Assembly (NCBI GenBank): GCA_002269645.1
Contig: NIVC01001645.1
Span: 62,001-126,000 of the forward strand
DNA from: Macrostomum lignano
Taxonomy: Eukaryota
Length of the DNA stretch: 64,000 nucleotides
Direction of reading: 5' to 3'
The position numbers and the translations under genes are program-made. Numbering within the stretch: position 1 is the stretch's first letter; each line of letters begins with the position of its first letter. Under the pieces are notes generated by a model, which was not told where the DNA came from, did not search any database, and saw nothing but the letters and a program-made list of their open reading frames with translations. This document shows, piece after piece, positions 42,782 to 62,676 of this stretch.

Positions 42782-45092
42782 ATGGCTCCAATGTTAAGTG
42801 CCTACATGTATGCACTGTTCTCATTCCTGATGGTGATTGCCAACAAGCTGCTGCTCACATCTTACCTATTTCCATCGCCTGCCTTTCTCTGCCTAACTCA
42901 AGTCAGCTCTACCTGCTTGTTTTTGTTGACTGCTCGCGCCTTTGGCATTGTCCAATTTGGAGCATCCCTGTCCGATGCTGCTGGGATATTTCCTCTGCCA
43001 ATATATTTCTTTGGCAACCTTGTGTTTGGCCTGTCAGGTACACAGGTAAGATAATTTTCAGCAGCCTAAGCCATAAAAATATGACTTTTAAGTTACATCC
43101 AACAATGATTTATTTATTAATTTATTCATATTATACTCAGTAGAGTAAGCGCCACATACATGCGCGACCTCCAAAGTCGGTCGGCCGTGCGACTTAGTTT
43201 TAACAAAAATGCGATGTAGTTGTTGGCCAAAAATGCAACGTACATGTAAAAAACGCAATTAACACAACTTTGGGTAAACGGCAGGAGTAACTATGACTCC
43301 TGCTATTAACTATAACTATTATCAAGCAAAAATGCCTCGTCAGCTACTTCGTACTACTACTTGGTGTTTTTCGGGTGGGCATTTTTGCGACTTCCATGGT
43401 TGGCCGCCAAATCGGTCGGCCGACTCGGCCGACTGTTGCGCATGTATGAAGCGCCATATAGCAGATGCAGTTTGGGATAATTAGGATTGTGATGACTAGC
43501 TAGATGGCTAAAAATGTGAAGGAATAGAGAATCGGTTTAGAATGGCTTTCATACATGCGCAACCTTGGGAATCACTCGGCCGTTTCTATTGGCAACACAC
43601 ACATGTAAGTCGCTATTGGCTGAGAGCAGTCACGTGACTACTATTCCGTCCAATAGCGACTTACATGTGTGTGTTGCCAATAGAAACGGCCGGGTGAATC
43701 CCTAGGTTTCGCCCAAGCATGCTTGTATTAGTAATCCCAATGTGCATTTTAAATATGACAGTTGGTTCTTTTTGGTGTCTGTCTACCACTGTCCAGTCCA
43801 TTTCTGCCTAGGTAAGAGGACGATTCTCATTTAGCAGTTAGGGGACTATTCTCATGCGCTGGTTAGAGGGATTCTCATGCGCTGGTTAGAGGGATTCTCA
43901 TGCGCTGGTTAGAGGGATTCTCATGCGCTGGTTAGAGGGATTCTCATGCGCTGGTTAGTTCTAAGGATTCTCATGCGGTGGTTAGGATTCTCAAGGGGTG
44001 GTTAGAGGGATTCTCATGAGGTGGTTCGGGGGATTCTCGTGGGGTGGTTAGAGAGATTCTCATGCGGTGGTTAGAAGGATTCTCATGGAGTGGTTCGGAG
44101 AATTCTCATGGGGTGGTTTGGAGGATTCTCATGGAATGGTTCGGAGGATTCTCATGGATTATTTAGAGTCATTATCATGCGGTGGTTGGAGGCATTCTCA
44201 TGCGGTAGTTAGGATTCTCAAGGGGTGGTTAGAGAGATTCTCATGCGATGGTTCGAAGGATTCTCATGGGGTGGTTCGGGGGATTCTCATGGCGTCATGG
44301 GGTGGTTCGGGAGGATTCTCATGGAGTAGTTAAAGGCATTCTCATGCGGCTGATTGTCTCCCCGCTGCTTACAGGCTGAAAAGATGCTACTGAATTCCCC
44401 TTGAATCACTGCAACCAAACTCGCAGGTGGTCAGCCTGCCAATGTTCACCGTGCTTCGCCGGCTCTGCATTCTGATGACCTTTATTGGCGAATTGATTTT
44501 CCTTCAACGTCGCGGCGACAACAGAGGCGTCGGTTTAGCTGTCTTCCTCATGCTGTTGGGCGCTTCCATTGCCGCTATGAACGATTTGACCTTTGACCTG
44601 GCCGGCTACGCATTCCTAATGCTAAACAATTTATTCACAGCTGCCTATGGCATCACATTAAAGTTGAAAACTGGCAGTTTGAGCGGATTGTCAAAGTATG
44701 GGATCCTGTATCACTGCTGCTCCATCGCTGTGCTGCCATGTCTGGCGCTCAACCTGTGGACTGGCGAGTTCTCCAGAGTGGCAGACTACCGCGGCTGGTC
44801 CCTGCCAGTGGTTTGGGCCCTGTTCTGCACCAGCAATCTGTTGCAGCTGTTCCTGCTGTACAGCACCATACAATGCACCGCCGACAATGGCCCCTTAACC
44901 ACCACCGTGATTGGGGTGTTGAAAAATGTTCTAGTCACCTATCTTGGCATGTTTATAGGTCGGGACTATGTGTTCACGTTGCACAATTTTATGGGCCTGA
45001 ATGTTAGCACTCTGGGCGGCGTTTTGTACACTTATTTGACATTTAAGGCGCCTAAGGTTGAGCCTCAGAAAGGTACCATCATTGTGCGCTAG
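42782..45092 (+). CDS. slc35d: Nucleotide-sugar transporter SLC35D1/D2 (fringe connection / sqv-7 family); exons 42782-43045 and 44427-45092 (309 aa)
   Basis: NKLLLTSYLFPS, FPLP, GLSGTQ|VVSLPMFTVLRR, DLTFDLAGY, KYGILY, LTTTVIGVLKN and GRDYVF..NFMGLN. Phase-0 GTAAG / CGCAG junction. Confidence 0.93.
43149..43454. mobile_element. MITE-like element in the SLC35D intron
   Basis: Imperfect TIRs GCGCCACATACATGCGCGAC / GTTGCGCATGTATGAAGCGC; no clear TSD. Confidence 0.55.
43543..43725. mobile_element. Foldback element with a near-perfect stem of about 55 bp; its 5' end resembles the TIR of the 43149 element
   Basis: 43562-43619 is complementary to 43649-43705; begins GGCTTTCATACATGCGCAAC. Confidence 0.6.
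43815..44350. repeat. 23-bp GATTCTCATG-family minisatellite (GATTCTCATGCGCTGGTTAGAGG)n
   Basis: Direct reading. Confidence 0.88.
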
Positions 45093-45239
45093 TCTGCACC
45101 GGGTCACTGAGCTGTAACCCAATACTTATCTACTCTGATTTGTGCGGTCGGGGTTCTGTGCTCAGATTTTTATTTGCCTTTCTGCTATGCTTCCACATAT
45201 CCATACAGGTTGGCACAGCTCCTTTGTTGATTCCTTATC

Positions 45240-45930
45240 TATCCCCACACCAATCTCTATCCATCCCCACCAATCTCTATCCCTCCCCACCAATCTCTAT
45301 CCCTCCCCACCGATCTCTATCCCTCCCCACCAATCTCTATCCATTCCCACACCGATCTCTATCCATCCCCACACCGATCTCTATCCATCCCCACACCAAT
45401 CTCTATCCATCCCCACACCAATCTCTATCCCTCCCCACCGATCTCTATCCCTCCCCACCAATCTCTATCCATTCCCACACCGATCTCTATCCATCCCCAC
45501 ACCGATCTCTATCCATCCCCACACCAATCTCTATCCATCCCCACACCAATCTCTATCCCTCCCCACCAATCTCTATCCCTCCCCACCAATCTCTATCCCT
45601 CCCCACCAATCTCTATCCATCCCCACACCAATCTCTATCCATCCCCACACCAATCTCTATCCTTCCCACCAATCTCTATCCCTCCCCACCAATCTCTATC
45701 CCTCCCCACCAATCTCTATCCATCCCCACACCAATCTCTATCCATCCCCACACCAATCTCTATCCTTCCCACCAATCTCTATCCCTCCCCACCAATCTCT
45801 ATCCCTCCCCACCAATCTCTATCCATTCCCACACCGATCTCTTTCCCTCCCCACACCAATCTCTATCCATCCCCACACCAATCTCTATCCCTCCCCACAC
45901 AAATCTCTATCCATCCCCACCAATACCTAT
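45240..45930. repeat. 20/22-bp minisatellite (ACCAATCTCTATCCCTCCCC)n
   Basis: Direct reading. Confidence 0.92.
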
Positions 45931-48900
45931 CTATCATTTATTCAATATATTATTGTGCTACTCTGTATAAAATACATTTTTAGTTTTTTTAATAAAATAA
46001 ATAGCCTATAATCAGTTCCGTGCCTTTGCGCCTGTCAGTATTTGCAGCTTTAAATTAAGCCTATAATTGTTATTTTATTCAAATAACGTTAAAGCTCTGT
46101 TTTGTCTTTCTCACTTTGCTCGGTGTGAAATCCTATTGAATAGTTTTAGGCGCTCCGAGAATAAAGCTCTATCATTCGTTATTTTCTTTCCTTCCCTCAG
46201 TAGTTTAATGCGCGTTGTTTTAAATCAAACAATTTCCTTCTATATCAGTTGTCAATGATTTTTCTAGTACGCGTCATAATTGTACGGCAGAGTGCAGCAT
46301 ACTACTGATTCCTAGTAATATTATTTGCATGCCAGATCAATAAAAATTTGATATGTGCCGGTATTGTTTGCAGAAAGAATGAATTGATAGATGATTTTAC
46401 TTTCATATTTTCTAAATAAAATTGCCCCAGTCAGTGATGTAGCATTTACTGTAACTGCTTTATTGTAGCTGTCAAACTTGAAAAAATGAGGATATAATTA
46501 ATTTAATTAATTGATGTTTCTTCTGTACTTTAGTTGTTGTCCACGTGGCAAAATCTAGCTTTGTGCTAATGTATTGCGAGTCAGGTCTGGTTCAGTAGAG
46601 GCAGTATTTGTTACGCCCAGATTTCTATATTCAGATGTATAGTGTGCTACAAATTGCAACCTTAGGAAGAAGAGGAAAGAATGAAAAAAGTATAGAGAGG
46701 AGATGAGATCTGAGATTCTTGCTATTTGATATCTTGGGGAGCAGAAGCAGCAGCTGCGGGGTCGTTCTCAAAGTTTAGTCGTAAGCAGTGAAACAAATAT
46801 TTTTGAAAATCAGCCTGAAATATTGAATCTTTTCTTATTTTAGCTCTAAAAGGACTTAAAAAATATATGCCTCTCATGGGTCTTAATCTTTTTTTAACAT
46901 TGAACTTTTGATGTTAATCTCATCAGAGTGCGCTATTTCATTTTTCGATATATATTTTTATTATCGCACGAGCTATAATACCCACTTTAGAGAAGCTACA
47001 TTCTGTTCACGTGGTCTTATTAAAGAAGAAAGTTGATAAATGTTATTTATAACTTTGGTTAACACAACCTAGAACCCATTTAACTCTTTCGATTGCAAAG
47101 CAGATGTTGCTATTTCGATTTTTGCTAGAAACGTAACATTATGAATGATTAAAAAATTCACTTTTAATTAATTTGTTCTGTTGATAGAATAAGCTAATAG
47201 CTGCGTTTTCTGCTGTTTTTTTAAGAAAGATAGTCATATCTAACACTAAAGTATCAATTAAGGCAGTTTCATTCTATATTAAAAAAGAAAAGTTAAATAA
47301 ATTCAATTTTAAGTTTTTTTCAATAGCACAAAATTAACCTAACAAAGAGAGATTTCGCTGACTACAACAAAGCAAGTAGCACCAAAGTTATTTTAATTTA
47401 AAGTCCTCATCTGTGGGATGAGAAAAAGTACCACTTTTTTGTCTCTAGTTATGAAAAAAAAATTTCTCAGCATATTGTTAGGTTTTTTGGATGTTTTTTA
47501 TGTACGCTCGTATTTAGATGAATTTTTGCTATTAATCACCCAATATGTTAGTCAGAACAAACAGAATTTCATTTATGTAGATAAAATTGACTATTTTTCT
47601 CTTAAAAACAGTCGTTTTTTGTTGTTTTCACACAATTTTTTTAACTGATTTAAAATTTGTATTGTAAGTTACAAGTAAACATAATGAGTCAAAACAAGAG
47701 GTAGTAGAAACTGAAAAGAAAATAAGAGTAACGAATAATAAAAAAGTTGCATGATTTGATTAGTCAAGAAATAGTATAAAAACAATTTTGCATCGGATTT
47801 ATTATCTATGAAATTAGCTGTCTGAAGCACAAAAAATTAATTTCTTTGAAACATTAAATTCATTCTCATATGTTCTGCAATTCATTAAAGATATATATGT
47901 AGCAACTTAAACATTCAGTTGATACTTTCCACCTTTGGATGCATATAGCTACTAACAAGAAAAAAGACAAAAGAAAAAACTTAATTGCCATTGATGCTGG
48001 CAATGTAATATTAAATATGGTACAGAAAGATGGAATCTCTACAGAGTGCTGCCACACGAATTTGTGAAGTGTTTAACAGATTAGTCATGGCAGTACCATA
48101 ACAGACATACTATATTTTATATTACTCTTCGATTGACAATTACGCTTTAGATATGTTTTAGATGATGATTTTCCATTGGGACTGACTCTATATACCGAGG
48201 CCAGACACAGTTAAGTGCGGCTGACAGCACTGAAGCGGCGGTTAACAGAGAATGCGATGAGCTGTGGCCTGTGGAGACAGCCAGCTGATGTACGAGCATC
48301 AGTAAAAGGGAAAGACATCCAATAGTGTCTTGCTATTGGTTTGTTACATGTACAGCGAACATCTACTTTTATTCTAATGTGATCGATTTAATTCTACTGA
48401 CCCAATTGGCTAAAGCACTGTAAACTGCACACCTCTCGGACGGATATGTAATGCCATTTGCTGCACTTTTACCTGTTTCTCTGCCAGAACACCAGCATCA
48501 TTGTATGTGCCACAATGCTAAGATGTGCAGTGGTCCTTTGGATGTGGTTAGTTCTGCAGGCATCGACGTAATTTATCAAATGAGACGAATTGTATACCGA
48601 GCATGACAGCTAGTGCAGGGCCAGAATCGATTACAGAGGTTCGCCAGAGCAATTGCAGTGATCCATGTGGCTGCCGAGTCAGACGTCTGTAATAGGCTAA
48701 TTAACTTACCAAGACCAAAGTATTTAATTTAAATTTATAAGCTGCTCTTTTAGTAGTTATGCAGCATAAGAAAATAGTATAGTAAAATAGTAAAATAGTA
48801 TTAAAGCTATGTTGCAGAATATAAATGCTTGCTGAATTATTTTTAAAAAAAACGCAAGTCTGTTCGAAAAAAGATACATGCATTTTAGGTTTTAAAAGAA

Positions 48901-50109: not shown

Positions 50110-50211
50110 CCTTAAGCGGGCCGGATTGCTATTGTGAAGGTTCAAAGGAGCCGGATAGAGAGGCTTCGCTGGCCGCCTGTGGCCCCGCAGGCCGGCGTTT
50201 GCCGAGCCCTG
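50110..50211 (+). mobile_element. Right end of a hAT (Charlie-type) element related to the 22438 and 55825 copies
   Basis: GCGGGCCGGATTGCTATTGTGAAG..GCCGGATAGAGAGGCTT, ending GTTTGCCGAGCCCTG; no left TIR found. Confidence 0.55.
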
Positions 50212-50505
50212 CTTAATAGATAGGTGATGTACCTTAACCTTACTCGCACATTCTAACAAGTAACCTTCCTCCCTCCAATCCATATTCTAAAGTGATTCGA
50301 TGTCCATGTGGCTTTCTCTACATAGCTACATGTAGATCCGCTCACTCATCCGAGCTGATCTCCTATTGGACAGAAGCAATGCTTGACCAATCCTTCCCGG
50401 TCCTGGAGTGTATATGTATATGCATCCAGAATACCCACTAGCCTAGTTCAGCCCTTGTGTTCAAGCAGAAATTCGAAGCCATACACACGGGCTCACAGAG
50501 GGATT

Positions 50506-53500
50506 ATGTTTTTAACTCAACACCCGTCCAAGTTCGCAGCAGCATGGCTAGTCCTGGCCGCTGTTCTGTTCTCGGGTTCTCTGGTTGTTCTCGGACGAGG
50601 CGACAACGTCTGGCGGGACGAGTTGACGCTGCTGCAGGCTCGGGTTGCGGCCGCCTGCCTGACCAACTTCAGCTACGCCGAACTGGCTGAACAGGTGAGT
50701 CAATGCGAGATGTAGAGAGCTCTGTTATCATTAGGCTGGACTTTCTGCCGCAGGTCAGGGCAAAAGACGGCCGGGCAGCCAGCAGAGGCAAGCAGTCATG
50801 TCCGTTCCGCTGACCCCTCGGCACGCTGCAGGCAAACACTCGTAGGGTGTGTACAGCAGCCCTGACTTTCTCATCGTCCAGGCATGTACACTCTGTGCCT
50901 TGGGGGTTGGCCATCATGGGCGAGAATCGCATTGTACGAATCTTCAGGTTATCCTTTCCTTATCCTTTTTTTCTACAGGGTTTGAAATTTCCGTCAAGTT
51001 TCCTCCAAGATCTTCATCTTGGTTCTGCCCCTTTCAGATCTTTTCAGGCTGAGCATCGCTACTCTCTCAAATCTTCGAGGTAGTTAATTTTATGTGGAGA
51101 TTTTCTACTGGTTTACAAGTATTTTGCAAAAAATTCAGTTTCTTAGACAGTTTTGAGTTTTTTCTGAAGATTATAAATCATTCCTTTTCGTTAGTGTAGC
51201 AGTTATCAGAGAAATATACTTAATTCGACAAAACATGAACAACCAGTGTATATGATTCAGACATGCAGGTATCAAATGCAGCAATAGGGCTTTAGTCCGT
51301 TGTAAACCTTGAATTCAACCATTTGACATTTTCGATGCTGCACTGCTTGCAGGCTTTGCGCATTAATCGTGTTTTGACGCATGCAGCTTTGACCCTGGAG
51401 CATTTTATCTCTAAATTCTAATTAGCTAGCTAATCGTTGTCTGAGCATCGTAAATAACTTGACTTGTAAGTATCTTCTATTTCTGTGCTTGCACCAGGAC
51501 ATGATAATACGCGTTTAGGCTCGTGATCTTTGGGCGTAACCTATATGGTTAATTTATTTTTTGCTAGCGGAAGTCGTTAGGTCTGATTTGGGATGAAAAT
51601 GCGCTTGAATGAATATCCATCAGAAATGACTTCGTGCACGAGTAAGGCGGCAAAGAAGAGCAGGACGAAATTGTGAACACGGCAGAACAGTTTTTCATTG
51701 AGGACACAAAAAGAGCGGGAAAATTGTCTTTGACGACACAAGAAACAACTTGGGCACAAGAGATAACTGAACAGTGCATTCTGAAAAAGACACAAGAAAC
51801 AACTTGGGCACAAGAGATGACTGAACAGTGCATTCTGAAAAAGACACAAGAAACAACTTGGGCACAAGAGATGACTGAACAGTGCATTCTGAAAAAGACA
51901 CAAGAAACAACTTGGGCACAAGAAATGACTGAACAGTGCATTCTGAAAAAGACACAAGAAACAACTTGGGCACAAGAGATGACTGAACAGTGCATTCTGA
52001 AAAAGACACAAGAAACAACTTGGGCACAAGAGATGACTGAACAGTGCATTCTGAAAAAGACACAAGAAACAACTTGGGCACAAGAGATGACTGAACAGTG
52101 CATTCTGAAAAAGACACAAGAAACAACTTGGGCACAAGAGATGACTGAACAGTGCATTCTGAAAAAGACACAAGAAATAAGAACTGAAAAATGTTCTTGA
52201 AGGCACAAAAATAATGGGAATCTCTCATCCAGTACACGAGATTTTACATAGATTGAGTAACTGAAGGCTCAAGAACTAAAAGTCCGTTATTGAAGACAAA
52301 AATCATGGAAGCACAAGAGAACTCGGCAATGCAGTGTCCTGGAAGACACAAGAGAACTCGGCAATGCAGTGTCCTGGAAGACACAAGAGAACTCGGTAGT
52401 GCAGTGTCCTGGAAGACACAAGAAAACTAGGCAGTGCAGTGTCCTGGAAGACACAAGAGAACTCGGCAGTGCAGTGTCCTGGAAGACACAAGAAAACTAG
52501 GCAGTGCAGTGTCCTGGAAGACACAAGAAAACTAGGCAGTGCAGTGTCCTGGAAGACACAAGAAAACTAGGCAGTGCAGTGTCCTGGAAGACACAAGAAA
52601 ACTAGGCAGTGCAGTGTCCTGGAAGACTCAAGAAAACTAGGCAGTGCAGTGTCCTGGAAGACACAGGGGAACTCGGCAGTGCAGTGTCCTGGAAGACACA
52701 AGAAAACTAGGCAGTGCAGTGTCCTGGAAGACACAAGAAAACTAGGCAGTGCAGTGTCCTGGAAGACACAAGAAAACTAGGCAGTGCAGTGTCCTGGAAG
52801 ACACAAGAAAACTAGGCAGTGCAGTGTCCTGGAAGACTCGAGAAAACTAGGCAGTGCAGTGTCCTGGAAGACACAGGAGAACTCGGCAGTGCAGTGTCCT
52901 GGAAGACACAGGAGAACTCGGTAGTGCAGTGTCCTGGAAGACACAGGAGAACTCGGTAGTGCAGTGTTTTGGAAGACAAACGCAGGCTAGCAGACTGCAG
53001 TCTTTGAAGATCGCTAAAAGTTCTAGCAAAGGCACTGGTAGCTGTGTGCCAGCAGCAAGATCCCCTTGGTGCACGCAGCTTCCCTCATTAGCAACGATGC
53101 AAAAGACAGATATTTTTGCCGATGGCGCTACTACAACAATCTTAATAAACTATTAGCATAAACCTTGTCAATCACCCTTGGTGCAACAACTGCCACGCGA
53201 TGGAGTTCACTCGGACGCCATGCGAATTGAAGGCTGAACTTTCTTACGCGTGCGCGTGTTGCTTGATTTTCCTTGAGAGAATTTGTTATTGCAGTGCGTC
53301 ATGAAAGGTTGTTGAAGTTCCTATACTAAAAATCAAGACAAGGATAACTTCAGAATCTTATGTAGCCTGTTTCCAATATCCCACGGCCGTGTTTACACTG
53401 AACTGCAGCCTCAACCTCCTGTGCAGCAGATACAGATCGCCTACTTGCCCTGAAGCGAAGCACAAATGTCTAAACAAATCAGCCAGACTGTGAAAAGTAC

Positions 53501-56500
53501 CAATTTTGCAGCGAAGCCTTGCGTTAACACATGGCCGACTCCTAAAGGGTACCAACTGCCAGAACAGAGCGGCCTGCGTTCAATCAGTCTTCGTGGCAGC
53601 AAAAATTGATTTGTCAGCAAGCAAACAGAATGGAAGGATTCTGCATGGTGTCCCACCACTGCAGCTGGTCCCGATCGAAAGTATAGAAAGAGAAACTGCC
53701 TCTAGCTGGGCCTTGTTCAACAATGCCAAGATAAAAATCTCAAGTGGCTATTGATCTCCTAATGACACTTTGCACTTTAGCTTTGCGCCCGGCCAGAAAT
53801 TATTGGAGCTAGAACAGCTAGAACAGCACACACTAAGGGTTACGCTACTAACGCTGTCACGTGCGGTGTCCTGGTGGGTCCTGCAGTGATATCCTATACT
53901 GCCTACACGCAGATTGTGTCCTTGATGTGAGCTGTATCTGGGGCGCTATCAAAAAGTAACGCTCTTATTCTTTTTGAGTGTGGGATAGGTCTTGCCCGTT
54001 CCTGGTACCCCCCTCCCCGATCCACTCCTGACATCGATCCCATTATGAGCTCGATGTCTTTAAAAGCAATAATGGTTTACACCCTACTGAACTTAAATTG
54101 ATTTCTGATCTCAAAAATTTTCCAACTCGTCTTCCAGGGCGGAGTTCACAGCGAGTCTGACGTAGCCGGAGACCAACTGCTTCTTCGTTGCCGTCTCAAA
54201 GCTGATTGTGCCGCCGTAAGTGCGCAATGTTATGGTTTTATGTACGCTCTGCACTGTCAGTCGTTATATTTTCGACCTCGTTAAAAGACGTCTATCTACG
54301 AGTATATTACATTTTTTGGATATCAGAATCAATGATGCCAATTCGAGTAGACAACTGCATCAGGGACTCAGAGTTCTCAAGCTTGGTTTCAAAGACGTGT
54401 TCAAACATCACCTAAATAATGGACCTTTGTAGACCTGTCTGGGCTTTAACTGAAGAGAGAACCTTTACAGATTGCTGAATGATTATAAAAAGGTACGATG
54501 CGATTTTCTTAAAAGTAAAGAATCCTAGCCTTAGAAAGTCGTCACAATTCTCTGGAAAAATCAGGAATATCTGTTTCCAGGCCAAGTCTCCAGAGGTCCA
54601 AGGCTTAAGTAAAGTGCCAGTCACTCTGCACTAAAATTATTTGAAAAAAACTCTTTATTATGCAAGGACTACAGGTATAAAAAAGGACTTTCCACCTTCA
54701 AATCTACAGTGGTTTTTCGGAAGTCCAATAATCTTGCTAGGGGTAGGGTGTAAACCATGGTACACCTTGGTTTGACCATGGGGTTTTACGGTAGAAAATT
54801 CAGAAGTTTAAAATCCATTAAAAATAATACAGCGGAGGCATGAGAAATCTGCAATTTTTAGGGTTCATAACACCAAAAGCTACACAAGACCTTGATTTCA
54901 AAGTGAATGCTTGAACCTTTGTTGATTAGAAATTTAGGCCCAGTGAAAGCGCCCAGCAAATCAGACAACATTGGATCCAACCAACGCTGGATGAGTCAGT
55001 GAGTAGCAGCTTGAGCTTGAGCCGAATTTAAGCCAAAAGCAGTCAAGTTTTCTTTCTAATTTATTCCGCCGCAGAAGAAACTGCCCGATCTTTTACCAAT
55101 TTTTCCAATCGCTTCTAGGAGGGGTGACTCACACCCAGGAAAAAGATTGAGCCGTCTGTGGAATCTCCACCCCCCATCGATGAATCCCTTCTTCCCCCCA
55201 CCCCCGCATCGGCTGTCTCCCAGGATGATGAGTAAAGTTACGCTGCGTAAAACAACACAACGGCACAACACGATGAAGCATTAGAGGAGTCTGGACTGGC
55301 TATAAGCATCATAGTTTTGTTAGCATTATAAGCTGCGGGGGAATGAGGAGGGTCAAATGACTCACGCAGTTCCCCACGGAAGTCTGCGACGCGACCCTCG
55401 TGTACGCTGTTTATATGTCTTACACGACAGAGCAGATTGCGTCATTCTCAATTGCTTTTTCCTCCCCGAATCTTTCCTCCGCCCACCAATTGCTCTTGAG
55501 CAGTGCTGGAACGCTTCGCTCTGGGATCCGCGGAAAACTCAGGAGGCTGACTGCGAGAAACTGTGCTCGGTGAGTGCTTAGGCTTTATTTTTCGAAATTC
55601 TGTATTTATTAATTTTCTGTTTTTACGTTTCAACTAGAGGGATCTGTCAGGAGTTTTATGTTACTAAATTTTGTGCCACTCAGATTGTCATGGAGACAGC
55701 CTGTAAGAATGTTAAGCGATTGCAAATCTTGTATGAGTATAAGCGAGTTGAAGTGACCCGACATCATACGTGTAAAATTGACATGTCTATTGCTTAGATG
55801 GCGTCTGTAGCCTAGTGGTTAGAGCAGAGGTCGGAGAACTCCGACCCGCAAAGCCTCTCTATCCGGCCCTCGGGTCCCTTGAAACTTCACAAAAGCAATC
55901 CGGCCCGCTCAGGGTCTCTTCTCAGCTCTCTTATACCTTCTCTCGATCCTCTCTCCACTTGTTTCCCTCCTCTCTCCCCTTTTCTTTCGTTTCTCTTCGC
56001 TCCTCTCTCATCTCATCTTCTTTCTTATATCTTCTCTTCTTTCCTCTCTCATCTCTCCTCTCATCTCTCTCGCCTTTCCCTCTCTTCTCTCATCTCTCGT
56101 TTCATCTTTCATCTTCTTTCTCTTCTCTACTTCCTCTCCCCTCCTCTCATCTGGCTCGCAGCCATTAGCAAGGTTCTTTACCTGGACCTTGAGGAAAACA
56201 AGTTTGCCGACCTCTGGGTCAGAGCGTCGGACTCACGACGGAAAGGTCGGAAGTTCGATTCTTGACCCACTCGGAACAATTTGTCTCCTTGAGCAAGACA
56301 ACTCTGCATTGCTTCAGTTCACCCAGCTGTAAAATGGGTGCCAGCATTAGCTGGGGTAATTGAGGGTGTGTGGCGACCCCCCCCCCCCAATCCTTGGACT
56401 GAACAGCCGTACGCAGCCTTTAGATAGGTGCACATCTGTCCATCAGGGCAGGTGTAATAAAAATGCTTGAAAATACACGACCTACGAACTATAGTTGGAT

Positions 56501-59500
56501 CTCAACGCAACGACGCTTGTAATAAATTGCAGCAAAATTACCGAGTGTTGAAATGCAACTGCAGGCGCAAAAAAACTTTTTCCAACTTAAGCCACGAGTA
56601 AATCGAGAGAGACAGATTACAGATACGTTTGGGTCCTATAGAGCCTGAGAAAATTCGGAATAGCGAATGATGCAGCGAGTCGCTTTGCTAAGGACGTTTT
56701 TTCCACTTACAGTAGCAGCAGTCGCATATCTACATGCAAAATCTCTACACGTAACAAAAAATCGCCACACCGAAGAACTCGACTGGCTGCCTCGGTTCCT
56801 GCTGCCAACTGTCGGCACTGTTCCACCAGCCGCAGCCCCCGGAGGTCAGAACTCTGCCGCCAGTGCCGCTCGTATCGGTGCGCAACGGCCAGCTGCACTT
56901 TGACGGTGTTGACTGGACGAAGCGACGAGGAACAGCGGTGCAGCTGGTGCTGGCCGTGCAGGCTCGGTTTGATTCTGTCGACTCTGGTGGGCAGACCGGC
57001 AGCAGCGGCTGGCGCAACCTCAGCCTGCTGGCCGGCGGTCCCGGACCCGTCCGGCTGGAGGAGCCCCGGCCGGGCCATCGCTACCAGTTCCGGGCGGCCG
57101 CGGTGTCTCCCGATGGCAGTCGGGGCTTTGGAAAACCGTCGGAGCCGCTGACGTTGCTGCCATTGCAGTCGACAAGGCCGCCAGCTGTCCGGCTGAGCGG
57201 CGGCCCAGCCAGCTTCGATGAGTCGACGGCGGCCGGCTGGGCCAGCGTGGCCGTCTGGTGGTCGCTGATCAATGGCAGTGTTGGCGACACGGAGTACGGC
57301 TTTCAGGTAGGCTGCTTACAGGTAGGTTGCTTACAGGTAGATTGCTTACAGGTAGGTTGCTTACAGGTAGGTTGCTTACAGGTAGGTTGCTTACAGGTAG
57401 GTTGCTTACAGGTAGGTTGCTTACAGGTAGGTTGCTTACAGGTAGGTTGCTTACAGGTAGGTTGCTTACAGGTACATGTAGGTTGCTTACAGGTACATGT
57501 AGGTTGCTTACAGGTAGGTTGCTTACAGGTAGGTTGTTTACAGGTAGGTTGCTTACAGGTAGGTTGCTTACAGGTAGGTTGCTTACAGGTAGGTTGCTTA
57601 CAGGTAGGTTGCTTACAGGTAGGTTGCTTACAGGTAGGTTGCTTACAGGTAGGTTGCTTACAGGTAGGTTGCTTACAGGTAGGTTGCTTACAGGTAGGTT
57701 GCTTACAGGTAGGTTGCTTACAGGTAGGTTGCTTACAGGTAGGTTGCTTACAGGTAGGTTGCTTACAGGTAGGTTGCTTACAGGTAGGTTGCTTACAGGT
57801 AGGTTGCTTACAGGTAGGTTGCTTACAGGTAGGTTGCTTACAGGTTGGTTGTTTACAGGTAGCGCCTTATCGAACTCGTTGCCTATAGCTATAAACAGAT
57901 TTTGCAGATTTGCCTTTTACATGGTGTAAAAAAATTGGAGTTTACCATAGTTTAAAAAGTCTTAGTTAAGAATAAAGGAATCAACTGAAGTGATGGGAAC
58001 AACCGAAATTTCTTGCTTGATTTGAATTTGGATACATACTTGTAACAAACGATGTCTCTCAGATTAAACAGAAGTGTTTTACAGGTTATTCGCAATTTAT
58101 TTCAACCTTTTCACCCGCTGCTGGCAGGTTAGCTGGGCCAAAGCCGCAGCTGGTGTGGATGAGCCGTCTACTGCTAATTCAGCTGTGAAGATATCGCAGT
58201 CACTGCCTGGAGTGAGTTATGGAGTTGATACTTAGGTAACTATGGTAATTACGATACTTACCCTGCATTGCCATTTTCTTTCAACTTTTTCAGACGGCAA
58301 GAAGTTACCAGATCGAACAACTTGAGCCCGATTCACTGTATCACATTGAGGTGCGTGTATTGAGCACAGGTCTATTGAGCACTGTTTCACACAGCTACTA
58401 ACAGTAGGAATAAAGGGTACTTCAATATTATGATCTAAAACATTGAAAATTCGCCATCCTTTGCGCCGATAAGCGACTGGCCTTTTAGCTCGTACGAGAA
58501 GTTTGTTATAATAAACAAAATTTTTTTAGAATTTCCTGTCAAGTCTATGACTATTCAAGCTTCGTGTAGCTTGTTGATCTTGTACTGTCAATTTTGATAA
58601 TTTCTTAAAGAAAATCATGTTTAAAGCAGAACAGCATCAGCCCTGAGAGCCAGCTATCTAATCTAAGATATCAGCCTCCCCTGTGAACTTTTTGGCCTAC
58701 CAACAACTCCCAATTGATCCTTGGCATCTGAGCCTGACGCTTGATGCCTTACGCAGGGACTACTTAAACTAGTTTAAGTAAATGGCCTTAAGTGGCCTTA
58801 CGATTAGAAAGTCAGGGCCGCTGTACACCCTGCCTGAGTACAGTATTGGCGCGTATGTTATGTGCTCAGGAGACTGCAGAATGTCGCCGAAGGTGTTGCG
58901 CCAGTGTGCCCGCAGCCCCCCTGCAATTATTGATTATTTCTGACACGCCCAGGTTCGCTCCCTGACCGCCAGCGGCATCTCAGGCCCGCCCAGCCGCATC
59001 AGCGTCAGCACCGCCAGACAGCCACCGCCCGCCACCTCTTGGCTTCAAGACCGGGCAGGTGGGAGCTCCTCCAAGAGTAGTGACAACGGCGGCTGTCCAC
59101 CTGACGATGACAAGTCGTATCAAACCTACACGCCGAGGACCAGCTTCGCGGACAATGCTGACGGCGTTGTAGCCACGGTAGGCCTGCTGACCGCCGGTTC
59201 CGGTCAGCCGATATTTCTGTTAGAGTGGCGGCGACGCGTCTGCATCGGGGCGCGCGGCGTTGGCGCCAGCGCGGCTTTGTCTGGCGCCATTCTTACGACT
59301 GCCCAAGAGGTGACTGCCAAAAGATTGGCTTTCTTATCTTTGTCACGCATGTAGAATTCGAAACTAAATTGCTCCAAATTTTCGAAAATTTCAAATGCAA
59401 ACAAATACTATTAGCTAATACCACACACCACAAACCACAAATACTAAAAAGCGGTTTTACTGCTGGTGTATCTCGCTTGGCTTGTGTCTGGAAAGTTCAT

Positions 59501-59852
59501 ATTAAAACATTAGCAGTATTTGCTAAATAAGTTGGAACCGCACGAACCTCGCTTTCAGCTGCGCAACTCGACAGTGCGCCTGGGCGGCCTGGAGTTCAAC
59601 TGCCACTACTGGGCTCGCCTAACGGCACTGCCCCACCGGCATCGGAAGTCTGTGCCATCGTCGATGCCTGCGCTGCCAAGGCCGAGGAAAACTGCTGCCG
59701 TCGAGTGGTGCTTTGTCACCCCGGCTGACTGCCGTGGCCGGCCTGGCTGCGGACCAGAAAGTGAGGAATCTGGTGAGAATTATTAATTAGTTAGTTAGTT
59801 AGTCAGTTAATTAGTTAGTTAGTTAGTTAGTTAGTTAATTAGTTAGTTAGTC

Positions 59853-59909
<57 letters not shown>

Positions 59910-59968
59910 ATTAGTTAGTTAGTCAGTTAGTCAGTTAGTTAGTTAATTAGTTAGTTAGTTAGTTAGTC

Positions 59969-60021
<53 letters not shown>

Positions 60022-60188
60022 ATTAGTTAGTTAGTCAGTTAGTCAGTTAGTTAGTTAGTCAGTTAGTCAGTTAGTTAGTTAGTTAGTTAATTAGTTAGTT
60101 AGTCAGTTAGTCAGTTAGTTAGTTAGTTAGTTAGTCAGTTAGTTAATTAGTTAGTTAGTCAGTTAGTCAGTTAGTCAGTTAGTTAGTC

Positions 60189-60231
<43 letters not shown>

Positions 60232-60232
60232 C

Positions 60233-60287
<55 letters not shown>

Positions 60288-60288
60288 C

Positions 60289-60367
<79 letters not shown>

Positions 60368-60368
60368 C

Positions 60369-60414
<46 letters not shown>

Positions 60415-62676
60415 ATATTTTATATATTATATTTTAGAAAATGCTTTGCTTAGAAACTTAATCAATCACAGCGTGTATGTAGCGAACAAATTGCTTTCGA
60501 AAAAAATGCAAAAATATCAGTTTCACTGCTTCATTGATTTTGCCAAAGCTTCAGTTGAAGGCTGGGTTGAAGCAGAGCCTTCAGATTCTTAGAAGGAACG
60601 ATTCGCATTGGCATTAAGCATATTAAGCATATTCTGTAGTACATGTAAACTAAAGTGAATGCACATTTCGTTGACATATACAGTGATGCACAGAGGTTGC
60701 ACAGTGACCCTGACTTTCACAGCGCCCGACATTTTACAGGCGTAATACCGCTGAGCTGATCAGCCCTTGTGGTATCCATCTTTCTCTTAATTTGAAAAGC
60801 CTAAATGCAGCTGTTTATGCTTGTATACGAGTATAATAGTCTTTACTGTAATTTTTTGTCTCCTCAGTGCTCACTATAGCTAAGAACTTTCCCACCTGAC
60901 CAGGTCCACCGACGGCACCAACTGGACTTGACGTGCAGCCCCTAGCTGGCTCCGTTCAAAACCAACCCGGCTGCCTTGTTACCTGGCGACAGCCTCATTC
61001 CGGATGGCGGGCTCCATCCGCTTATCGAATCGTCTGGAGTCCCAGGCTGGACGACTCGGTAATTCCGGATGTCTCCGGCGCCTCGCCGCTGCAGCCGCGC
61101 ATCGATCCGGAGCGGGCGAGAACAAGAGTGGTTGACAAGGTAAACTACCTTTCGGAAACTACGTTACATTACATTTATTCCTTGAGGGTTCTCTCACAGC
61201 TTGGGCAGAGTTCGAACACAATTCAACATAAATTCATATTTTTCAGACAGTCACACGCCTGACAATACGGCCGCTCAACAGGGCGACTCTTTATATTGTG
61301 AAGGTCCGCAGCCTCGCATTCCAAGCCAACGGCAATGTGCTCGCTAGCAACGATGTCACGCAGCTCTGCGCTACCGACGGCTTTCTCAGCCTGAAAAGTT
61401 CGGGCAGCGCTGCGGCGGCCATCCAGCACAGGACGGCATTTAACGGTGAGCCAACAGTTCACAGCGATGCTTCAGCCAGCGTCAGCCACTAGCTCACAGC
61501 AGACTGTCAGACATCATCTCACAGCAAACTGTCAGACACTAGCTCACAGCAGACTGTCAGCTACTAGCTCACAGCAAACTGTCAGACACTAGCTCACAGC
61601 AGACTGTCAGACATCATCTCACAGCAAACTGTCAGACACTAGCTCACAGCAGACTGTCAGACATCATCTCACAGCAAACTGTCAGACACTAGCTCACAGC
61701 AGACTGTCAGCTACTAGCTCACAGCAAACTGTCAGACACTAGCTCACAGCAGACTGTCAGACATCATCTCACAGCAAACTGTCAGACACTAGCTCACAGC
61801 AGACTGTCAGCTACTAGCTTACAGCAAACTGTCAGACACTAGCTCACAGCAGACTGTCAGCTACTAGCTCACAGCAAACTGTCAGACACTAGCTCACAGC
61901 AGACTGTCAGCTACTAGCTTACAGCAAACTGTCAGACACTAGCTCACAGCAGACTGTCAGACATAATCTCACAGCAAACTGTCAGCCACTAGCTCACAGC
62001 AGACTGTCAGCCACTAGCTCACAGCAGACTGTCAGACACTAGCTCACAGCAAACTGTCAGACACTAGCTCACAGCAAACTGTCAGACACTAGCTCACAGC
62101 AAACTATCAGCCACTAGCTCACAGCAAACTGTCAGACACTAGATCACAGCAAACTGTCAGACACTAGCTCACAGCAAACTGTCAGCCACTAGCTCACAGC
62201 AAACTATCAGACACTAGATCACAGCAAACTGTCAGACACTAGCTCACAGCAAACTATCAGCCACTAGCTCACAGCAAACTGTCAGACACTAGATCACAGC
62301 AAACTGTCAGCTACTAGCTTACAGCAAACTGTCAGACACTAGCTCACAGCAGACTGTCAGCTACTAGCTCACAGCAAACTGTCAGACACTAGCTCACAGC
62401 AGACTGTCAGCTACTAGCTTACAGCAAACTGTCAGACACTAGCTCACAGCAGACTGTCAGACACTAGCTCACAGAAAACTGTCAGACACCATCTCACAGC
62501 AGACTGTCAGACACCATGCTACTCAGAATAATTCCGAAAAATCCAAAATTTCAGGCGACTACTCACAGTTCTTGGCAGCGGGCCAGAGTCCAGTACTAAA
62601 TATCGGATCCGACTTAATAAAACAATTATGTATGTTGTTTCTTTGCGCCACAACTTTGCTAGTATTGTTGCGTTAG
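50506..62676 (+). CDS. anos1: Anosmin-1 (KAL1)-like protein, 710 aa: signal peptide, Cys-box, four FN3 domains, hydrophobic C-terminus; exons 50506-50694, 54138-54215, 55504-55569, 56776-57306, 58128-58211, 58294-58350, 58953-59309, 59559-59772, 60904-61139, 61247-61445, 62555-62676
   Basis: LLQARVAAACL resembles KAL1 VQRARCASRCL; RCRLKADCAA|C resembles WCQNHKQCSKC; GCLGSCCQL resembles ECLTSCEFL; PRPGHRYQFRAAAVSPDGSRGFGKPS resembles [33 protein letters not shown] and CFVTPADC resemble LSFSCKY and FFTTPPC. Eleven GT-AG exons join into an open 2133-nt frame. Confidence 0.85.
51733..52190. repeat. 54-bp minisatellite (about 8.5 copies) in anosmin-like intron 1
   Basis: ACACAAGAAACAACTTGGGC recurs at 51736, 51790 and so on. 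Confidence 0.93.
52305..52980. repeat. 35-bp minisatellite (CAGTGCAGTGTCCTGGAAGACACAAGAAAACTAGG)n
   Basis: Direct reading. Confidence 0.93.
55800..56463 (+). mobile_element. tRNA-derived CORE-type SINE interrupted by a hAT MITE
   Basis: A-box TAGCCTAGTGGTTAGAGC; B-box AGTTCGATTC at about 56252. Body GTCTCCTTGAGCAAGACA..CATTGCTTCAGTTCACCCAGCTGTAAAATGGGT resembles the MIR/CORE domain. The 3' boundary is approximate. Confidence 0.75.
55825..56216 (-). mobile_element. hAT (Charlie/Buster-type) MITE, 392 bp, CT-rich interior
   Basis: TIRs CAGAGGTCGGAGAACT / AGTTTGCCGACCTCTG (14/16 match); 8-bp TSD GGTTAGAG / GGTCAGAG. Confidence 0.85.
57303..57862. repeat. 15-bp minisatellite (CAGGTAGGTTGCTTA)n starting at a 5' splice site
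   Basis: About 37 units; the first unit overlaps the donor at 57307. Confidence 0.96.
59787..60415. repeat. (TTAG)n microsatellite, about 630 bp
   Basis: Direct reading. Confidence 0.97.
61485..62515. repeat. 26-bp minisatellite (CACTAGCTCACAGCAGACTGTCAGAC)n filling the last anosmin-like intron
   Basis: Direct reading. Confidence 0.95.

Follow-up and report, generated by a model that had tools for sequence, protein, structure and literature searches.

Has the flatworm Macrostomum lignano evolved an anosmin without a WAP four-disulfide core, or one in which this domain has become hard to recognize? The question is raised by a gene on the plus strand of a 64,000-nucleotide (nt) stretch of contig NIVC01001645.1 (contig positions 62,001 to 126,000; this whole stretch, whose own numbering is used below, is the window), where a cysteine motif runs into the first of four fibronectin type III (FN3) domains and which a first-pass annotation had read as a WAP-less anosmin. 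The gene is not a new type of protein; it is an anosmin, probably one with a decayed WAP. A canonical WAP is absent from the locus and the last two of the eight WAP cysteines, C7 and C8, are absent as well. We lean, if only slightly, towards a fast-evolving M. lignano anosmin-1 paralogue in which the WAP decayed in place to a six-cysteine remnant and was not deleted.

The gene is a genuine anosmin-1 homologue. An exhaustive phmmer search returned 53 matches at E<=1e-3 among 1.84 billion representative proteins. Three M. lignano fragments of the same gene (or near-identical copies) aside, the top matches are flatworm anosmins with E values between 2e-18 and 1e-13: Heterobilharzia (2e-18) and Opisthorchis (9e-18), then Spirometra/Sparganum, Clonorchis and Taenia. 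Their sources label these proteins anosmin-1 or Kallmann syndrome 1. Further down come the anosmins of nemerteans, annelids, nematodes and vertebrates. Among all PDB sequences, human anosmin-1 (1ZLG) was matched at E=2.2e-18, well outside what chance would give, and the next matches were generic FN3 domains at E>0.02. The first FN3 domain (FN3-1) carries the anosmin signature RYQFRAAAVSPDGSRGFGKPS, and RYQFRAAAVSPDGSRGFGKPSEP aligns with human 1ZLG and the family profile, in which the conserved motif reads WYQFRVAAVN.HGTRGF..PS. In a rough neighbor-joining (NJ) tree, with Schmidtea sequences outside its sample, the protein falls among the flatworm anosmins; its branch is long, and its grouping with flatworm groups II+III has a bootstrap of 50%. 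Homology search, the 1ZLG match, the signature and the tree thus bear out the earlier assignment to the anosmin family, and the tree does not place the protein outside it. The Pfam Cys_box model (PF17869) had no match in the predicted product at E<=10; it also missed nine of nine flatworm and nemertean anosmins at E<=1, which argues that the model is vertebrate-centered. The CLTNF, C-x2-C and C-x3-C motifs of the Cys-rich region align to anosmin family columns.

The gene model was built from splice consensus, phase, GC islands and the UniRef fragments P0001 and P0003. It predicts some 12-13 exons at 50506-62676 on the plus strand and a product of 717-746 amino acids (aa), varying with exon 2 and the 3′ end, where the earlier annotation had 710 aa. 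The frames of exons 1-13 are open and their phases compatible throughout. The predicted exons are as follows.

Exon 1, 50506-50694, plus strand: ATG, signal-peptide-like N-terminus MFLTQHPSKFAAAWLVLAAVLFSGSLVVLG and first cysteine in AAACLTNF; donor CAG/GTGAGT.
Exon 2 (optional), 50767 (or 50779)-50841, plus strand: GC-rich island; phase-0 AG acceptors 50766/50778; donor CTC/GTAGGG.
Exon 3, 50882-50947, plus strand: ACTLCALGVGHHGRESHCTNLQ, within the Cys-rich region; splice sites, phase 0/0.
Exon 4, 54138-54215, plus strand: GGVHSESDVAGDQLLLRCRLKADCAA, end of the Cys-rich region; acceptor tcttccag, donor gtaagt.
Exon 5, 55501-55569, plus strand: QCWNASLWDPRKTQEADCEKLCS, first half of the WAP-like module (C1 in question, C2, C3).
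Exon 6, start (the flagged motif), 56776-56829, plus strand: NSTGCLGSCCQLSALFHQ, WAP-like C4, C5 and C6, then the C7/C8 position without cysteine.
Exon 6, remainder, 56830-57306, plus strand: linker, FN3-1 (with RYQFRAAAVSPDGSRGF) and start of FN3-2.
Exon 7, 58128-58211, plus strand: FN3-2; tblastn match to P0001, splice sites checked.
Exon 8, 58294-58350, plus strand: FN3-2, a segment that scores 33 bits with Pfam fn3.
Exon 9, 58953-59309, plus strand: end of FN3-2, linker and first half of FN3-3; matches P0001.
Exon 10, 59532-59772, plus strand: second half of FN3-3, closing with the anosmin-typical TP.DC....C (VTPADCRGRPGC).
Exon 11, 60904-61139, plus strand: FN3-4; 99% identical to UniRef fragment P0003; splice sites.
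Exon 12, 61247-61445, plus strand: end of FN3-4; spliced at 61445/GTGAGC, or left unspliced and ending at the stop at 61490-61492.
Exon 13 (proposed last), 62555-62676, plus strand: hydrophobic tail ending in GSDLIKQLCMLFLCATTLLVLLR and a stop codon; phase-1 donor/acceptor match, acceptor aaatttcag.

The only database models of the gene are the error-laden UniRef fragments P0001-P0003, of which P0002 is a prediction full of frameshifts for this gene or an almost identical one. P0002 holds EQCWNASLWD...ADCEKLCS fused to exon-6 sequence, the one independent support for the exon 5/6 junction; it also contains a portion of exon 1 and an error-laden version of exon 4, a sequence in which one of three frames is open. 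Exon 1 reads MFLTQHPSKF-AAAWLVLAAVLFSGSLVVLG-RGD after its first ATG, its signal peptide being judged by inspection, and its AAACLTNF lines up with CxxxCL in other anosmins (CLTNF vs. CLTDF in the second M. lignano anosmin, Mlig028549, and CLSL in vertebrates). Inclusion of exon 2 would add ...SADPSARCRQTL and make C-x5-C-x2-C across the exon 3 junction, the spacing of human CQNHKQCSKC. A start of exon 2 at 50759 was rejected for its broken frame, and a weak donor at 50698 gives a workable but unpersuasive variant. CTLC of exon 3 was aligned to the C-x2-C of other anosmins. Exon 5 has a polypyrimidine tract with an AG acceptor, the donor TCG/GTGAGT and phase 0/0. When the N-terminus was searched by itself against 5.8 billion proteins, nothing matched. 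At the 3′ end, a consensus donor ACG/GTGAGC (61437-61445) lies 45 nt before the exon 12 stop, with a phase-matched acceptor 1.1 kb downstream (62546-62676). Splicing of exon 12 to exon 13 would exchange the C-terminus for the hydrophobic tail LCMLFLCATTLLVLLR, to which the tail of the paralogue P0041 is comparable, and exon 13 probably adds a C-terminal tail resembling a glycosylphosphatidylinositol (GPI)-anchor signal.

The first step in the argument concerns what lies downstream of the cysteine motif. Conceptual translation of 56755-56901 on the plus strand gives QKIATPK/NSTGCLGSCCQLSALFHQPQPPEVRTLPPVPLVSVRNGQLHF, within an open frame that spans 56755-57885 and is closed on its 5′ side by an in-frame TAA at 56752-54. 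The AG at 56774-75 is the sole one between this TAA and the first cysteine codon, so exon 6 begins at 56776, the same start that the first-pass annotation had given; it ends at 57306, with GTAGGC next. The exon (56776-57306, plus strand) is a single open exon which reads NSTGCLGSCCQLSALFHQPQPPEVRTLPPVPLVSV... directly into FN3-1, as had been claimed and as translation, frame and splice sites confirm, and it is 99% identical to P0001, which is annotated as a fibronectin type-III protein. The CC of the motif is encoded by 56800-56805, and no cysteine is found from there to FN3-1, that is, in the 36 residues separating CC from the FN3-1 Trp. Since exon 6 is continuous from CC into FN3-1, C7 and C8 cannot sit in a hidden exon flanked by introns. 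The earlier argument that no intron there can hide extra exons covers this downstream stretch only; a WAP would lie upstream of the motif and across the exon 5/6 junction, where introns occur.

The second step is the cysteine pattern itself. Joined, exons 5 and 6 (QCWNASLWDPRKTQEADCEKLCS/NSTGCLGSCCQLSALFHQ) give C-x15-C-x3-C-x5-C-x3-CC (C113, C129, C133, C139, C143 and C144), to be compared with C-x12-C-x3-C-x5-C-x5-CC-x3-C-x3-C in the human anosmin WAP. All three multiple alignments (MAFFT auto n=51, L-INS-i n=27, auto n=34) set CEKLCSNSTGC-LGSCC on WAP C2-C3-C4-C5C6, the anchored profile joins them in placing DCEKLCSNSTGCLGSCC on these columns, and in the 34-sequence alignment (A2) the columns of C3, C4, C5 and C6 do not vary. 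Beyond CC, QLSALFHQ sits where human anosmin has SNGCGHTC, the eight residues carrying C7 and C8, and 36 residues separate C6 from the FN3-1 Trp, where other anosmins have a median of 39 (range 34-45, one clade with insertions excepted). Conservation of this length argues that C7 and C8 were substituted in place and not deleted. In a profile of WAP plus FN3-1 anchored in the same register, the real residue order scored +13.4 bits against a shuffle mean of 6.7, with 52 of 2000 shuffles reaching or exceeding the real score; the WAP-only hidden Markov model (HMM) gave 4.1 bits, a score reached by 73 of 2000 shuffles. The first-pass annotation had taken GCLGSCC for the last Cys-box motif. This identification is not supported, as the Pfam Cys_box model does not match and the alignments and profile use WAP columns; GCLGSCC most likely represents WAP C4-C5C6, and the six-cysteine stretch is probably homologous to WAP. 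C1, C2, C3, C4 and C5C6 would then be encoded by exon 5 together with the 18 codons that open exon 6, Cys113 being either C1 or the last Cys-box cysteine depending on the alignment. Two N-glycosylation sequons lie inside the WAP-like module (55501-55569, 56776-56790), NAS after Cys113 and NST between Cys133 and Cys139, the latter at the conserved Asp/Asn position of canonical WAPs.

The third step was a search for a canonical WAP anywhere it could be encoded. The Pfam WAP model (PF00095, gathering threshold 20.8 bits) found none at E<=10 in the spliced product or in its 81-aa and 114-aa N-terminal segments, and none in the three raw frames of 50200-56900. A custom HMM built from 20 anosmin WAP domains was run against 2932 six-frame fragments of the window for a hidden single-exon WAP, where the best hit had E=0.26 and fell at unrelated sites, and against 4585 Cys-rich junction peptides from all GT/AG pairs in 50900-56870 for a split one, where the best score was 9.9 bits at arbitrary junctions. 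A Cys-rich open reading frame at 53852-53956 (RCPGGSC...) was rejected as a WAP for its lack of splice sites and its wrong spacing. The PROSITE signature PS00317, C-x-{C}-[DN]-x(2)-C-x(5)-C-C, is unmatched in the window protein, which reads C-S-N-S-T-G-C-x3-CC there; this pattern also misses most flatworm anosmins. In every register, six at most of the eight cysteines of a canonical WAP are left. AlphaFold2, run on the 34-sequence alignment, gave residues 1-61 of the modeled segment a predicted local distance difference test (pLDDT) score <50, and Foldseek returned FN3 matches only. The proposed Pfam scan of the spliced product, together with the HMMs, did not show a WAP domain. What remains of the WAP-less claim is that the HMMs find no WAP in product, raw frames or GT-AG junctions and that C7 and C8 are gone; complete absence is too strong a reading, given a likely six-cysteine remnant.

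How much weight can silence of these models bear? The suggested search of the genome for a paralogue that retains the WAP provides a control. M. lignano has at least two anosmin genes, and the second, BOX15_Mlig028549 (P0041, 784 aa), which is annotated merely as a hypothetical or FN3 domain-containing protein, retains the full set of eight WAP cysteines along with four Pfam fn3 stretches and a hydrophobic tail. It occurs in three gene copies (P0041, which is BOX15_Mlig028549g3, P0091 and P0092). Its WAP follows the pattern CPAP...C...C...C...CC...C...C with enlarged loops (C2-C3 x6, C3-C4 x8, C7-C8 x9) and escapes Pfam WAP, Pfam Cys_box and the custom anosmin-WAP HMM alike. HMM silence is therefore not diagnostic in M. 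lignano, as an eight-cysteine protein is equally missed, and, judged from its cysteines, M. lignano as a species is not WAP-less. Many parasitic-flatworm anosmins likewise fall short of the Pfam WAP threshold of 20.8 bits or go undetected (P0004 15.6, P0007 16.3 and P0016 20.0 bits; P0006 and P0013 no match). In group III, trematode and cestode anosmins (P0007, P0013, P0015, P0017, P0037 and P0046; members include Clonorchis anosmin-1 G7Y634, Taenia solium, Schistocephalus, Trichobilharzia and Echinostoma) have a six-cysteine WAP without C2 and C8, in the pattern CP...C-x5-C-x5/6-CC-x3-C, of which we found no description in the literature searched. On these cysteine patterns, WAP erosion appears to be recurrent in flatworm anosmins. 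When fast-evolving anosmins are at issue, domain HMMs miss even intact WAPs, and domain loss called from HMM silence needs to be checked against the cysteine pattern.

Several observations weigh against decay in place to a six-cysteine remnant. The statistics of the remnant are weak (p about 0.03-0.04), the WAP-only test loses significance on a longer segment (677 of 2000 shuffles equal or beat the real score), and the exon 5/6 peptide ranks 174 of 3054 among GT-AG junction peptides with at least five cysteines. Pairwise phmmer comparison with vertebrate and nemertean anosmins favors another register, which puts GC...SC on C7/C8 and CSN..GC.G..CQ on CCSNGCGHTCQ at the cost of more indels and a longer linker; with two registers, the identity of the surviving cysteines is ambiguous. 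The whole Cys-rich part has pLDDT <50 in AlphaFold2. Exons 2-5 and the exon-6 acceptor rest on splice prediction from sequence, this acceptor is weak and lacks a good polypyrimidine tract, and use of either of the phase-0 AGs at ~56829 and 56835 could skip the motif altogether.

The alternative that survives best is a truly WAP-less anosmin, in which the WAP was wholly lost and the six cysteines are an extension of the Cys-box (CxxxC) whose WAP-like spacing arose by chance. It gains from the silence of Pfam WAP even at E<=10, the unmatched PS00317, the remnant scores near chance for Cys-rich peptides, the lack of a fold in AlphaFold2 and one alignment that sets DCAAQC on the last CxxxC of the Cys-box. 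Yet the spacing C-x3-C-x5-C-x3-CC, with two cysteines side by side, typifies WAP and not a CxxxC Cys-box, every multiple alignment uses WAP columns for the stretch, the conserved length from CC to FN3-1 points to decay in place rather than deletion, and Pfam Cys_box is silent too. We consider complete loss unlikely, although it deserves serious weight. It is quite improbable that the gene is a decaying duplicate, either a pseudogene or a copy drifting to loss of function with an eroding Cys-rich N-terminus: its branch is the longest in the NJ tree, cysteines are lost in Cys-box and WAP alike and FN3-1 and FN3-3 fall under Pfam detection when scanned alone, but open frames and compatible phases are kept in all 12-13 exons, the FN3-1 signature is intact in a domain that AlphaFold2 models confidently, and fragments that derive from a different assembly or copy show 99% protein identity to it. 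Least probable of all is a gene-model or assembly artefact with a normal WAP in a missed or unassembled exon or behind another exon-6 acceptor, since, for all the poor acceptor, the tandem-repeat-filled introns that could hide assembly problems and the error-laden fragments that are its sole database models, neither the six frames of the window nor the 4585 junction peptides contain a WAP, C7 and C8 would follow CC within the continuous exon, and P0002 independently connects exon 5 with exon 6.

The FN3 part of the protein is better preserved. AlphaFold2 models FN3-1 at pLDDT 85-93 and every top Foldseek PDB match of this domain is an FN3 domain. Pfam fn3 marks three stretches on the whole protein; in single-domain scans, FN3-2 scores 33 bits and FN3-4 20 bits, while FN3-1 and FN3-3 are below Pfam detection alone and are recognized by alignment to anosmins. 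The VTPADCRGRPGC that follows FN3-3 fits the consensus TPxC...C (alignments A1 and A2). By alignment all four FN3 domains that had been claimed are present. Their number had also been called vertebrate-like, but it is probably ancestral, as Mlig028549 and nemertean (Lineus) anosmins have four as well by counts of fn3 stretches. Drosophila has two FN3 domains and C. elegans three (PMC3580776).

If the WAP did decay in place, the product would run from a signal peptide through a reduced Cys-rich region, a vestigial WAP and four FN3 domains to a probable GPI-type hydrophobic tail. In canonical WAPs such as those of elafin and SLPI, the disulfides connect C1-C6, C2-C7, C3-C5 and C4-C8. A reduced WAP could form at most three: C1-C6 and C3-C5 might be retained, and C2 and C4, left without partners, might bond to each other; in group III, C2 and C8 belong to two of the native disulfides (C2-C7 and C4-C8), and the leftover C4 and C7 may likewise pair. 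Homology predicts a secreted protein, or a GPI-tethered one should exon 13 be genuine, whose FN3 domains would bind heparan-sulfate proteoglycans and which would modulate receptor signaling through FGFR or, as in planarians, RoboA, with the WAP-dependent regulatory input weakened or altered. Anosmins modulate signaling by FGFR in vertebrates and C. elegans and RoboA in planarians (PMC3580776, PMC12932670). The role of their WAP is debated, being required or dispensable depending on the activity in C. elegans, Drosophila and C163Y/C172R patients, and WAP disulfide mutants in C. elegans and Drosophila keep some activities and lose others (PMC3580776, PMC1629024). As mutants retain partial activity, a reduced WAP is compatible with a functional, subfunctionalised paralogue. 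It is possible, though we hold it only tentatively and find it doubtful, that the window gene is such a paralogue, disabled in its WAP, under selection and keeping only the FN3/heparan-sulfate-dependent activities beside an anosmin with a complete WAP. If so, a flatworm amenable to transgenesis would provide a natural counterpart to the mWAP mutant of C. elegans and the C127/128S mutant of Drosophila. Natural losers of WAP disulfides, the window gene with C7/C8 and group III with C2/C8, could reveal which parts of the core evolution can spare, and paralogue pairs allow WAP-dependent and FN3-dependent functions to be tested against each other. Recent work on planarian Anos1a and RoboA has linked flatworm anosmins to the control of stem-cell fate (PMC12932670).

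The introns of the gene are packed with repeats. At 57299-57862, a 15-nt tandem repeat of ~38 copies begins exactly at the exon 6 donor (57306/57307). Its unit, GTAGGTTGCTTACAG, starts with GT and ends with AG and presents a donor-like CAG/GTAGGT every 15 nt. All copies are in frame (VGCLQ repeats) and the frame stays open to 57885, and splicing from a later copy would lengthen FN3-2 by multiples of five residues. Further tandem arrays lie in other introns.

51735-52177: 54-mer x8.
52306-52978: 35-mer x19.
59783-60414: (TTAG)x158, directly after the exon 10 donor.
61481-62514: 25-mer x41, starting at the exon 12 stop codon and filling the proposed last intron.

With regard to a transfer RNA (tRNA) or short interspersed nuclear element origin of intron sequences, ARAGORN found no tRNA in them. 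Upstream of the gene, 44394-45089 (plus strand) is open for 232 codons and matches TPT (PF03151), the triose-phosphate/nucleotide-sugar transporter family, at a sub-threshold 25.6 bits (E=9.5e-6, cutoff 30). This TPT-like stretch is followed at 45062-46008 by a proline/serine-rich repeat open in three frames.

Compared with WAP domains at large (elafin, SLPI; PF00095), the window protein has a similar spacing of the first six cysteines, C-x(n)-C-x3-C-x5-C-x(3)-CC, and differs in having no C7/C8, no signature [DN], a C4-C5 loop of x3 instead of x5, no HMM match and no confident fold. Group III anosmins share a six-cysteine WAP with it and the weak (50% bootstrap) grouping with II+III; unlike the window protein, in which C7 and C8 are both missing and the C4-C5 loop is shortened, they keep C7 (CC-x3-C) and the signature C-x-x-D-x-x-C-x5/6-CC, and some of them pass or come near the Pfam WAP cutoff, which the window protein does not. 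Mlig028549 comes from the same species and has the same architecture, four fn3 stretches, a hydrophobic tail and a WAP region invisible to Pfam, whereas its eight WAP cysteines and expanded loops set it apart, and in the NJ tree it groups with flatworm group I and not with II+III. Among the anosmin-1/KAL-1 proteins (human ANOS1, C. elegans KAL-1, Drosophila Kal-1 and planarian Anos1a-d, planarians having four anos1 genes; PMC12932670), the window protein stands out by its six (or five) of eight WAP cysteines, its failure in Pfam and PROSITE scans, its very long branch and a Cys-rich region with 7 or 8 cysteines vs. 10 in human; at the position of human N267 it has Ser, as does C. elegans (S241). 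With these proteins it shares the order of signal peptide, Cys-rich region, WAP position and FN3 repeats, the FN3-1 signature (W/R)YQFR.AAV...G.RGF..PS and the TPxC...C after FN3-3, as well as a likely GPI tail in common with C. elegans KAL-1 and planarian Anos1a, for both of which GPI sites have been reported (PMC12932670, PMC3580776).

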